DNA of 64,000 bases from Ostrea edulis. Taxonomy: Eukaryota. The position numbers and the translations under genes are program-made. The DNA is taken from assembly GCF_947568905.1 (NCBI RefSeq), contig NC_079164.1, positions 108,934,001 to 108,998,000 of the forward strand, given 5' to 3'. Position 1 is the stretch's first letter. Each line of letters begins with the position of its first letter. The notes beneath the pieces were generated by a model that saw only the letters and a list, made by a program, of their open reading frames with translations, searched no databases and was not told the DNA's origin. Positions 44,559-48,035 of this stretch are shown one piece after another.

Positions 44559-47500
44559 TCAACGAAAGATAACTTCAAAATTCTCTTGCCCTAAAAGATC
44601 AAAGAGGGATTTTAGATCTTCGCAGACAATCAAATCGGACTCTTCTTTTTTCTCTCTTTCGTATAGCAAACTTTCTGTTTCTTTCGGTATTTTACTTCCA
44701 TATAATGTCAATGTTTTCTCCTGAGGAGGTGGAACCCATTTTCCTCGAAGCACACCGATTATCTCTATTATTTGTAAGTCCGGATCATCACCATTTCTTA
44801 TAACATAGGCAGCACTATCTCCACGCACAGAGAAAGGAGTGTCTATTCCTTCAATAAGTAGTACTGTATATGGTACATTTCTAGTGTGGTCATTGAAATG
44901 TCTGACATGTTTTACAATCCCGCTTGTCCAACCAGTTTTGGAACCTTTTTTATGAACCATTTCTCCGGTCAATTCGTCAGCATCACAGTTATAAATTTCC
45001 GCGGAAGACACTTCATCTTCAGAATTTCTAAAATCTCTATCGAAATTTTCATAGAGTTTACGATTTATAACCACAAGGGAGAGATCTCTAGGCTTAAAAT
45101 TCCTGGTACAATTGCCGACCAGCCGAAGATGTTGGTCAAATTTAACATACATTGATTGAGTTGGATTATATAAGTGGTCACAACTAAACAGAACTAGTTC
45201 GTCCTTCCGTTCTTCACCACTTTTCTTAAGATGAGCAAATCCACCAACTGTGCCTTGGTGTTTTTCTTTCATGTTCGTTGCTGCATTCTCGCTGCTCTGC
45301 TCGCTGTGGTATGAAAAACACTCATCTCCCTGTTTAACAAAGGAATGTGGCTCTACCTTCAATTCACCAACAGCGGAGAGTAATTCAGTTTCCCACGTAA
45401 ATTCCCCAGTATTTTGCAGCTTTTCCAATTCCTTTCCAATACTGTCAATTGTTTCTCTCTTGGTTTCTTCTTTAATGTGTATCTGGAATTTGTCTGACCA
45501 AAACCCATAACTAATTATGGATTGCTTGTATCTAAAACAATTACATTCAAAAAGACATAAAAGAACTGTTAATAGTATTTGTTCACCATTATATATGTCT
45601 AAGAAGCAAATACTGAAATGATATTCCGTTATGGGATTTCAACAGCAGATGTGATGAAAGTGAACGTACATGTACTTACTCATCCAAGATCAACCTCATC
45701 ATTTTGGGTATGACTTTACTTGGTTGAGACGCGGCTTTCCTTTTTCTGGGCATGTATTTGCGTCTGTTAAGTCTTTTGCATATTGCATCCTTTTGAACCG
45801 ATAACGATCTGTTTCTTGTCAAAGTTTTACGAGTTTTCGTTAACTTTTCAATAAAGCATAGCAACTTTTCTTCTAAAAGTGACGTCACAGCCTCACGCAC
45901 ATCTTCTCTTCTATTGGCCACTTGTATTATTTCAACATTTTTAACGGATAATTCTTCGCTCAACATCTTGCATTTAGGGTCAGTCACCAACAAGACAATG
46001 AGAGAAATACCATATTTGGATAAATCGGGTAATGATCTTCGTAGCTTAAAAAAAGATGAAATGTTTTGAGTTAGTCAGACTAAACTTTCCAAGAAATATC
46101 AGTTGAGTTATAAACATGCAGCAAAAGTCGACATTACCTTTTTAACATCCTCAGATGTTGTACGTCTGGTTTCTGAATTCGTAAAGCAGACGATACATAA
46201 TGGTGAATCATTCTTAAGCTTTTTCTCAAATTCTGTGTGTTCTATAGCTGAAAATAAACATTCAATCATACCCATGATTTACATCATTTGAAGTCTGAAA
46301 ATAATAAAAGTAACACCATTTAAAGACATTTTTGTTACCCTTTTCGCAATAATAATGTTCATGTGAGAGTAGGTCCAAATTGCATTTTGAAACTATTCCG
46401 CGCGCCATGATCAATGGAAAAGACCACATCACGTCATCTTCAACCACATCAACTCCTTCATCTAACGAAGATTTTTCCACTTCTGACAATTTTCCAATAA
46501 GTTTTCTTATCAAAGAAACATGGTAGTCATATCTTGGAAAGTTTTGTGATGCAAAACACAGACAGACTGAAACAAAACCGGAAAAAATATGATTCAGATG
46601 AATTAAGTAATTGGCAAAGAGCACGAATATTGTAACAAAATTTTCGAATACTGAGAATATGTTTTATCTTACTTTTATCAGCAAAATCCCAATTTTCAAC
46701 TGCGAACAATTTCGATTCAATGTCCTTCCAGTCTTTATAGCTATCTAGTTTGGATGTAAATATACTTGGAAACTCGTCAACTTTACTCCTTTCGAGATAG
46801 AATTGCAGAGTTGATTTTAGTTTCAACATTTCTTTATCGTTTTTCCAAGTCAAAAAGCTTCTGAAAAACTTTTCAAAGCCATTTGAATTTGAGATCAGCC
46901 CGAAAGTCAAGGATTCCCGCTCAAACCTGACGTTAGGTTGGTCACATGGTTTCAAGGAAGATGACATAATGTACAACTGTGTAAAAAGCATTGATAAAAA
47001 TTCAGAATCTTTGAGCAATGGAGATTTGTCGAGTATATCTTGATCGATATCACATAATCCACACGCAATCCTCTGTACGATGGCGGGATAATAGCTTTGA
47101 TCTATTATCAACCGTCTTTCATGTTTAATGCCCTCTCCTAGTTTCGCAAATGTCACCAAGGCAGATACACTGATAGAATCTAGTAACAATCCAGGGTCGT
47201 GGAAAAGGAGCCATTTCAGAGCTGGCAATCGTAGATTATTCTCTGATGATAATGACATCCATTTCAAATGTTTGATAATTTCTTCCTCTGATTGAAATAT
47301 CGAGTCACTTTGAATGGAATCTCCTGGAATTTTTCGCATGTTCCTCAGGCAGAGAATGTTATTCCTTACATGTTTGCTATCCTGGGGTTTTAGACCAAGA
47401 GTATCACTTTCTCCAACTGCCATAGCCACAGCACATATTCTACAGAACTCTTCAAAGTTGTCTCTGATGATTCCCTGTATTACTAGCTCAAAGTATTGCT

Positions 47501-48035
47501 CTGGGTTGAATTCAGTCTTGTACACTACACCCCATCTCAAAAGCAATGTGCAGTACAACGGAAATCCCATTCTTTCATCGTGAAGATCATGGAATGGACT
47601 CTCAGCATTGTATCGCAACCATAGTTTTTTTCGGTCAGAAATGCTCCACTGCAGTTGATATCTGTGTAACTCAACATTTTTCGTTGCATGACTTGATTTT
47701 GAGTTCAAGGTTACGATAACAAATCTTTTCTTGGATGGATCACAAGTATCTTGAACAACGTTTTTCCACTTTTGACAAGAAAGATCCACATTATCAAGGA
47801 TTATGTGAGATTGTTCAAGATGATTTTCCCACTGTGAAGGATAAGTAATGAAAGCTATTTTTTCTGCGTTAGCAAACTTATGTATGGCAAAAACTGCACA
47901 ATGCGTCTTCCCACTGCCTTGACAACCATCCAGTACTATACACCTGTGTCGCCGTAACGTCCGTATTATATCATCAATTAGAGAGATGTCTACGTGATAA
48001 GAATTAAAGTGCTGAACTGTAGAATTCCAAGATAC
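44559..48035 (-). CDS. STAND-type (nSTAND3-like) P-loop NTPase fused to a C-terminal trypsin-fold serine protease domain, >=1012 aa, 5' end not identified; exons 48035-46673, 46566-46339, 46247-46138, 46044-45680, 45531-44559
   Basis: Manual translation upstream of ORF 46527-47789 gives RCIVLDGCQGSGKTHCA (Walker A, 47904-47927), HIILDNV (Walker B), FVIVTLN and MGFPLYCTLL. The last exon has GTVGGF, FSCDHL, RDLSLV, KKGSKTGWTSG and FSVRGDSA. Four GT-AG introns (106, 91, 93 and 148 nt) join all ORF pieces in frame. Confidence 0.85.

Follow-up and report, generated by a model that had tools for sequence, protein, structure and literature searches.

Does Ostrea edulis encode, in one chain, both a nucleotide-dependent switch and a protease? 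The question arises at positions 44559-48035 of a 64,000-nucleotide (nt) window of its genome (NCBI RefSeq assembly GCF_947568905.1, contig NC_079164.1, positions 108,934,001 to 108,998,000 of the forward strand), which is the whole stretch of DNA that we analysed and to whose first letter all positions below refer. An initial annotation, made from the letters alone, had proposed that this region hides a NOD-like receptor (NLR)-like nucleoside triphosphatase (NTPase) of the STAND class (signal transduction ATPases with numerous domains) fused to a trypsin-fold protease. We show here that the region belongs to LOC125666572, a real, spliced, six-exon gene on the minus strand. Its predicted product carries an N-terminal P-loop NTPase module, likely of the STAND class, and a C-terminal protease domain related to rice NAL1, and the gene looks like the result of an exon-level fusion.

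LOC125666572 is a spliced gene that encodes a single chain

We read the region on the minus strand, to which all coordinates of the gene refer, and searched it for GT..AG introns of the four lengths given in the initial annotation. One set of introns had good splice consensus (46672-46567, 46338-46248, 46137-46045 and 45679-45532, of 106, 91, 93 and 148 nt respectively): all four start with GTAAG, GTAAC or GTAAT and end with a pyrimidine tract followed by AG. Joining the exons between and around them (48035-46673, 46566-46339, 46247-46138, 46044-45680 and 45531-44559; 3039 nt) gives a frame of 1012 amino acids (aa) whose sole stop codon is terminal, in keeping with the reading frame of at least 1012 aa that had been claimed. 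This frame is identical, letter for letter, to residues 8-1019 of the RefSeq protein XP_048755704.2 (Ostrea edulis, "uncharacterized protein LOC125666572", 1019 aa), whose numbering we use throughout. The remaining residues 1-7 (MEGSNES) are encoded by 21 nt at 52644-52624, followed by the donor GTAAGT, and this is the 5' exon that had been noted as missing.

With this exon, LOC125666572 has six coding exons and five introns. Exon 1 (52624..52644), an exact match to the N-terminus of XP_048755704.2, is followed by an intron of 4588 nt (48036..52623, with the acceptor TTTTTCAG at 48036). Exon 2 (46673..48035, aa 8-461) encodes the P-loop NTPase core and a helical region, and exon 3 (46339..46566, aa 462-537) opens a module, recognisable by the motif FPRYDYH, that is common to stand-alone NAL1-like proteins. 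Exon 4 (46138..46247, aa 538-574), delimited by the spliced frame and by contig joints, leads to exon 5 (45680..46044, aa 575-696), which would contain an alpha/beta region, a long helix and a basic linker, as judged by secondary structure only. Exon 6 (44559..45531, aa 696-1019 and the stop codon) encodes, in an AlphaFold2 (AF2) model, a beta-beta-alpha-beta subdomain and then the protease domain. A mechanically called open reading frame (ORF) of 420 aa falls in the cluster that contains XP_048755704.2 and begins at a GTG at 47789, downstream of both the Walker A motif (47927-47904) and the Walker B motif (47807-47790). The module was therefore hidden, as the initial annotation put it, in the track of ORFs; it was not hidden in the annotation of the genome, where a public RefSeq gene model exists already, without a functional name.

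Transcript evidence came from assembled contigs of four runs (X1-X4), which we compared with positions 44300-48400 of the window. Runs X1 and X2 belong to the same study and derive from a relative that is about 95% alike, not from O. edulis; their RNA label is guessed. Contig evidence of this kind gives no expression levels and cannot exclude other isoforms. The joints in the X1 and X2 contigs omit precisely the predicted introns (148, 93, 91 and 106 nt), with CT..AC ends on the plus strand, equivalent to GT..AG on the gene strand, and with zero depth within the 148-nt intron. All four junctions that the initial annotation expected were thus seen in the contigs of the relative, together with the join to exon 1: an X2 contig whose match ends at 48035 carries a further 18 letters beyond it, and these are exon 1 letters in reverse complement. 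A single contig of 2218 nt spans 44918-47576 across all four joints, from the NTPase exon to the protease exon. Because this contig runs through every joint, a single molecule carries both the NTPase and the protease exons, which form one gene encoding one chain. Two separate genes, with transcripts ending between the NTPase and the protease exons, are ruled out by the same contig and by the single-chain RefSeq model. Contigs of X3 and X4 (RNA-seq) cover 44485-45003 with 0-1 differences and extend at least 74 nt into the 3' untranslated region, whose minimum extent is 44485..44558.

Intron 1 contains two gaps of N (50581-50835 and 50869-51144) and several tandem repeats. At 48139-48263, just upstream of exon 2, a 60-bp unit is repeated 2.1 times with 95% identity, which probably explains why the Logan genomic contigs L001-L006 stop there. 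At 48948-49146, about 4.5 copies of a 42/88-bp unit form an array from which repetitive plus-strand ORFs arise, and at 51176-51253 there are 5.2 perfect copies of a 15-bp unit. A tblastn search detected no paralogues or tandem copies of the gene in the window.

The N-terminal module is a P-loop NTPase, likely of the STAND class

Full-length relatives about 60% identical to the protein are present in Saccostrea echinata (one protein of 1012 aa) and in S. cucullata (1033 aa, encoded at two loci); with the O. edulis protein they make up the four orthologues compared below. The Walker A motif, or P-loop, GCQGSGKT (47904..47927, aa 44-51) matches GxxxxGK[ST] and is invariant across the four except at position 46, which is Q or R. 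Walker B, HIILDN (47790..47807, aa 84-89), does not have the second acidic residue: Asp88 is followed by Asn89 instead of Asp or Glu (IILDN), as the initial annotation had pointed out (DN for DD), and both residues are invariant in 4/4 orthologues. The module also holds the strand FVIVTLN and a strand-helix element, QLQWSISDRKKLW (aa 128-149), and about 27 aa after the latter comes GFPL (47556..47567, aa 164-167), a GxP-type motif that is likewise invariant. From its position in the sequence and established knowledge of the class, GFPL is a good candidate for the GxP motif of the STAND helical domain. The succession of Walker A, Walker B, strand, strand-helix element and GxP is reportedly typical of STAND proteins, as Leipe et al. 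are said to have described in 2004.

The best Pfam family match of the module is nSTAND3 (PF20720), with E-values of about 1e-5 in all four orthologues (24.8-25.7 bits for XP_048755704.2 and 25.0-26.1 bits for the other three). Generic AAA and ResIII matches are weaker. In a language-model atlas, the clusters nearest to aa 1-470 are of nSTAND3 and nSTAND5; the first of them is molluscan, and 97% of its members carry nSTAND3. We conclude that the module likely belongs to the STAND class, and its nearest family there is nSTAND3.

The initial annotation had also called the protein NLR-like while remarking that it is not a standard metazoan NLR architecture. The second statement is borne out and the first is too strong. 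We obtained no Pfam match to NACHT, NB-ARC, LRR, WD40, TPR or ankyrin at E-values up to 0.1-1, and because neither a repeat sensor nor NACHT or NB-ARC is detectable, the protein is not an NLR in the usual sense.

Between the NTPase module and the protease lies an alpha/beta region (aa 547-643) with weak thioredoxin-like Pfam matches (E 6e-4 to 0.016) that are below threshold and consistent in three orthologues, and we assign it to no family. A basic cluster, KRLNRRKYMPRKRK (45736..45777, aa 664-677), separates this region from the protease module, and nearly all of its basic residues are invariant in the four orthologues. Its composition resembles a nuclear localisation signal; alternatively, it could be a processing site. 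Neither a signal peptide nor a transmembrane segment is present (maximum hydropathy 1.42 over 19 residues), which speaks against a secreted or membrane protein; the product is predicted to be soluble and intracellular.

The C-terminal domain has the fold and the triad of a NAL1-like protease

We searched exhaustively with aa 697-1019 using HMMER, which returned 41 proteins, and aligned 36 of them (alignment A1). The motifs GTxGG, the His of CxH, KxGxxTxxTxG and GDS are invariant in A1 and the catalytic Asp is nearly so. The third of these is the motif that the initial annotation had recognised, as KxGxxTGxTxG, from NAL1/Ssy5-like proteases. The same annotation had placed His at about 45175, Asp at about 45085 and Ser at 44814-44816, in chymotrypsin order. 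These positions are right, and the residues fall on the triad columns of the family: predicted catalytic His815 (FSCDHL, 45174..45176) is invariant in the 36 members, predicted catalytic Asp845 (RDLSLV, 45084..45086) is kept in at least 90% of them, and in GDSA (44811..44822, aa 933-936), which contains the predicted nucleophile Ser935 (44816-44814), the G, D and S are invariant. The His-Asp-Ser triad is thus conserved on the catalytic columns of the family, with proteolysis itself a prediction.

Profile and structure comparisons agree on the fold of this domain (44562..45350, aa 757-1019). When the A1 profile was compared with the Protein Data Bank (PDB), rice NAL1 was the best match (E 1e-8), followed by classical S1 enzymes with marginal E-values; a single-sequence phmmer comparison of the domain with NAL1 gave E 0.03. 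The His and Ser columns of the family fall on NAL1 H234 and S385: they are 151 residues apart on the NAL1 chain, which is the H234-S385 spacing, and the published NAL1 triad is H234/D291/S385 (PMC12012508). An AF2 model built from A1 for the exon 6 part had a mean predicted local distance difference test score (pLDDT) of 85, and Foldseek placed NAL1 at the top of its matches (E 8e-10). With VIA-align, the model gave Z 20.1 to alpha-lytic protease (186/198 residues aligned) and Z 18 to rice NAL1 (about 210 residues aligned, 19-20% identity). Among the relatives in A1, Peptidase_S64 is matched by 23/36 (best E 9.9e-11), Nal1_C by 19/36 and Trypsin_2 by 9/36, so that membership in the NAL1 and S64 Pfam families is transitive, through relatives. 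The initial proposal of a trypsin-fold, NAL1/Ssy5-like protease is therefore upheld by the model, and a chymotrypsin-fold protease domain with affinity to NAL1 and Ssy5 (S64) is well supported.

In structure-based atlas matches, this protease fold recurs in other multi-domain proteins of molluscs, including a cluster that carries HEPN_DZIP3. The small beta-beta-alpha-beta subdomain ahead of the protease barrels (aa 697-750, about 45370-45530) is conserved across the oyster family. Streptogrisin and alpha-lytic clusters that bear a Pro_Al_protease prodomain align over model residues 1-323, this subdomain included, so that it may be prodomain-like.

The gene looks like an exon-level fusion found in Ostrea and Saccostrea

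The segment encoded by exons 3-6 (aa 463-1019) is collinear with the whole of O. edulis LOC125679617 (588 aa) and with the whole of S. echinata LOC133205754 (689 aa), in both cases with a BLASTP E-value of 1e-28, and homology begins at the first residues of exon 3. These stand-alone oyster NAL1-like proteins resemble that segment; unlike the fusion protein, they own no NTPase exon, have unrelated first exons and keep GDSG. Exon 2 has no homology to the stand-alone paralogues, and its end has no similarity to the first exon of LOC133205754. We mapped the LOC133205754 gene and found four introns with phases 1, 1, 0 and 2; in the fusion gene, introns 2-5 have the same phases. For the final two, the positions coincide exactly in the aligned proteins (between K574 and L575, aligned with K266 and L267; and in the codon of E696, aligned with that of N395), and exon 3 is flanked by phase-1 introns on both sides, as in LOC133205754.

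This collinearity with stand-alone proteins and the intron phases in common point to a gene made by fusion at the level of exons, and the comparison places the fusion point at the exon 2/3 junction. On the simplest reading, one exon encoding the NTPase took the place of the first exon in a gene for a NAL1-like protease, by way of a phase-1 intron, and did so before the split between Ostrea and Saccostrea. In S. echinata, LOC133205754 and the orthologue of the fusion gene share the chromosome-scale contig JAVQLB010000054.1, on which they lie about 3.6 Mb apart.

Word-based protein searches with exon 2, with aa 1-470 and with the four-sequence alignment returned only the Saccostrea orthologues and fragments. 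The fusion was found only in Ostrea and Saccostrea, which suggests that it is absent from Crassostrea/Magallana. The Saccostrea orthologues have the same six-exon structure and intron phases. In S. echinata these phases are 0, 1, 1, 0 and 2, and synteny of the locus extends to both sides, where a proline dehydrogenase gene and, opposite it, a gene for a 335-aa protein flank the orthologue. Across the four proteins from the two genera, the Walker A Lys and Thr, the Walker B Asp-Asn, GFPL, His815, Asp845 and GDSA are all invariant.

In the window, the exons of the proline dehydrogenase gene (Pro_dh) lie at 35800-41760, and their counterpart beside the S. echinata orthologue is at 12101-16216 of locus L007, on the same S. 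echinata contig. Conserved exons of the gene for the 335-aa protein, which matches no Pfam family, lie at 55300-56630, with their counterpart at 2978-4659 of L007.

Oligomerisation-activated proteolysis as a proposed mechanism, and its alternatives

How might such a chain work? We favour, with cautious confidence, the reading that a STAND-like NTPase and a NAL1-like protease act together through self-association of the chain. Binding of nucleotide by the N-terminal NTPase module would drive self-association; this would gather the protease domains and make them competent; and the activated protease would cleave proteins of the cytosol or nucleus as part of a pathway of defence, stress or cell death. 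Activation of caspase-9 by the apoptosome is a comparable case. What we infer here comprises membership in the STAND class, the formation of oligomers, catalysis, the substrates and the biological role, and the coupling of the switch to the protease, like a role in immunity or cell death, is proposed by analogy with known systems.

Rice NAL1 is active only once it has oligomerised into a hexamer, as assembly orders the loop of the catalytic His (PMC12012508), and in bacterial STAND systems trypsin-like peptidases serve as effectors that are either fused or recruited (PMC8195603; PMC10907252). Because of the oligomer dependence of NAL1 and the existence of these bacterial STAND-peptidase systems, oligomerisation-activated proteolysis is the best-supported model. 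A bolder form of it would be an animal "apoptosome in one", in which a triggered STAND-type NTPase oligomerises and switches on its own NAL1-like protease, which would cleave regulators in the nucleus or cytosol and so start caspase-free defence or cell death, with the NTPase exon having been captured in oysters ahead of a protease gene. We hold this form only tentatively and consider it unlikely on balance.

Several observations weigh against the favoured reading, the first group of which concerns the NTPase. The expected sensor-1 position reads TLN, without Arg; because of this and the D-N of Walker B, hydrolysis of NTP may be slow or absent. The nSTAND3 scores of all four orthologues are under the Pfam gathering cutoff of 27.2 bits, and the match, within profile positions 2-73, comprises only the first 64-73 of 155 positions, under half. 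An AF2 model of aa 1-696, built from four sequences, had a pLDDT of only 41. A profile of the same residues found nothing significant among PDB sequences, and searches of the N-terminal part with PADLOC and NCBIfam profiles returned nothing useful. No repeat-type sensor domain was detected, and for aa 200-700 we recognised no relatives outside oysters (the atlas scores there, 0.77, are uninformative). The claim of a STAND NTPase of nSTAND3 type in the initial annotation thus stands in its first part, a P-loop NTPase whose best family is nSTAND3, and is weakened in its second by the scores and by the model of the fold. The X1 and X2 contigs, for their part, come from a relative and from runs only guessed to be RNA.

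Some of these observations would also fit a regulated protease without a STAND switch. Here the P-loop region would be degenerate or a mere nucleotide-binding scaffold, and control would come from a prodomain-like element or from autoprocessing, as in Ssy5 or alpha-lytic protease. Besides the D-N of Walker B, the missing sensor-1 Arg and the partial, below-threshold nSTAND3 match, this explanation draws on the prodomain-bearing streptogrisin and alpha-lytic clusters, which align over the entire model (residues 1-323), on Ssy5, which is restrained by an inhibitory prodomain (PMC6761765), and on the stand-alone paralogues, which work without any NTPase. However, the Walker A Lys and Thr and the Walker B Asp are invariant across two genera, which argues that nucleotide binding has been kept, and all family-bearing atlas neighbours of the NTPase module are STAND families. 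The protease barrels account for most of the template modelling (TM) scores of 0.53-0.56 that were obtained against proteases with a prodomain, and no Pfam Pro_Al_protease match was found. We therefore regard control without a STAND switch as fairly improbable.

A second group concerns the protease. The fourth GDSx position is Ala in all four orthologues, as the initial annotation had seen, and in 3/36 rows of A1. It is confined to the fusion proteins, and the other 33 aligned members have GDSG. Moreover, the protease domain of LOC125666572 itself has no Pfam match at E 0.01 to Nal1_C (PF25819) or Peptidase_S64 (PF08192). Both points would suit a pseudo-protease, in which a trypsin-fold domain, dead through GDSA and other substitutions, serves as a module for binding or assembly: outside the fusion proteins, the whole 36-member family has GDSG, and this domain is its most divergent member. 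Yet His, Asp, Ser, the Gly-Asp that precedes the Ser and the KKGxxTxWTxG loop are all retained and are invariant in the four orthologues. In chymotrypsin-like enzymes, the oxyanion hole is formed by the backbone NH of the Gly before the Asp and by that of the Ser itself. Since the residue after the Ser lies outside the oxyanion hole, GDSA need not abolish activity, and we judge a dead protease to be distinctly improbable.

The last group concerns selection. Among 40 listed differences between the window and the contigs of the relative, 13 are synonymous and 27 change an amino acid, for a rough ratio of nonsynonymous to synonymous rates (dN/dS) of about 0.5 (about 21% synonymous being expected by chance). 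One could accordingly picture a recently formed chimera under little or no selection for function, born of a chance fusion of exons and now transcribed and drifting, all the more as the fusion was found in Ostrea and Saccostrea only. One contig of the relative would also suit drift: at 44946, in the A-run of the HKKG codons, an X2 contig has lost 1 nt, shifting the frame inside the protease domain. X1 does not show this deletion, which is a real allele or else an error of assembly; apart from it, every coding indel that separates the window from the relative has a length divisible by three. Three species have kept a full-length open frame of about 1000 aa, at loci that are syntenic and whose intron phases are identical, and the catalytic and P-loop residues are invariant. 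Drift of this kind is, in our judgement, very improbable.

Relation to known systems and significance

The best match in the PDB by profile and by Foldseek, rice NAL1 (PDB 8PMG, 8PN2, 7Y77 and 8HAU; Nal1_C, PF25819), is likewise an intracellular chymotrypsin-fold serine protease, and GTxGG...H and KxGxxTGxTxG...GDS are common to both proteins. In contrast to NAL1, the oyster protein has no NAL1_N domain and no match to the non-canonical ATP-binding domain of NAL1, carries GDSA instead of GDSG, is only 19-20% identical, and is fused to a Walker-type NTPase, of which NAL1 has none. The fungal proteases Ssy5 and SltB (MEROPS S64, PF08192) are linked to it through the 23/36 relatives that match Peptidase_S64. 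Ssy5 works inside the cell as an endoprotease, has an extensive N-terminal regulatory part and cuts latent transcription factors (PMC3145550; PMC6761765). The regulatory part of Ssy5 is a prodomain, whereas that of the oyster protein is a P-loop NTPase, and the oyster protein has no Pfam S64 score of its own and no evidence of autoprocessing.

Bacterial STAND conflict systems (Kaur et al. 2020/2021; nSTAND clades; Avs-type) likewise pair a STAND NTPase with a trypsin-like peptidase, and bacterial Avs5 also carries nSTAND3, the nearest family of the oyster NTPase. In bacteria, the effector usually stands at the N-terminus or is recruited by an adaptor, and the C-terminus holds a repeat or CLec sensor. 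The oyster protein differs from these systems in having its protease at the C-terminus, in the repeat sensor that we did not find, in its animal host and in matching no PADLOC model. A STAND-type switch with a fused effector is therefore of a kind known from bacteria and not a new category.

The proposed logic, in which an NTP-dependent STAND oligomer activates a protease by proximity, is also that of Apaf-1/caspase-9 and of the metazoan NLR inflammasomes. Those systems consist of separate chains joined by CARD or PYD adaptors, use the caspase fold and have NB-ARC or NACHT with WD40 or LRR, none of which was detected in the oyster protein. To our knowledge, the known animal STAND machines recruit caspases through adaptor domains. 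In the literature that we searched, we found neither NAL1/S64-like proteases of animals, the oyster family included, nor a chain that joins STAND and protease in an animal.

Ostrea edulis is a commercially and ecologically important species that is affected by Bonamia and Vibrio disease. If the favoured reading is true, an animal STAND-like NTPase wired directly to a NAL1/S64-type protease would be a different design of inducible protease machine and a direct parallel to the bacterial STAND-peptidase designs. The fusion point, readable at the level of introns, would be a clean example of exon shuffling in a gene that is likely of immune type. It would also give the oyster family of intracellular NAL1-like proteases a context linked to function.

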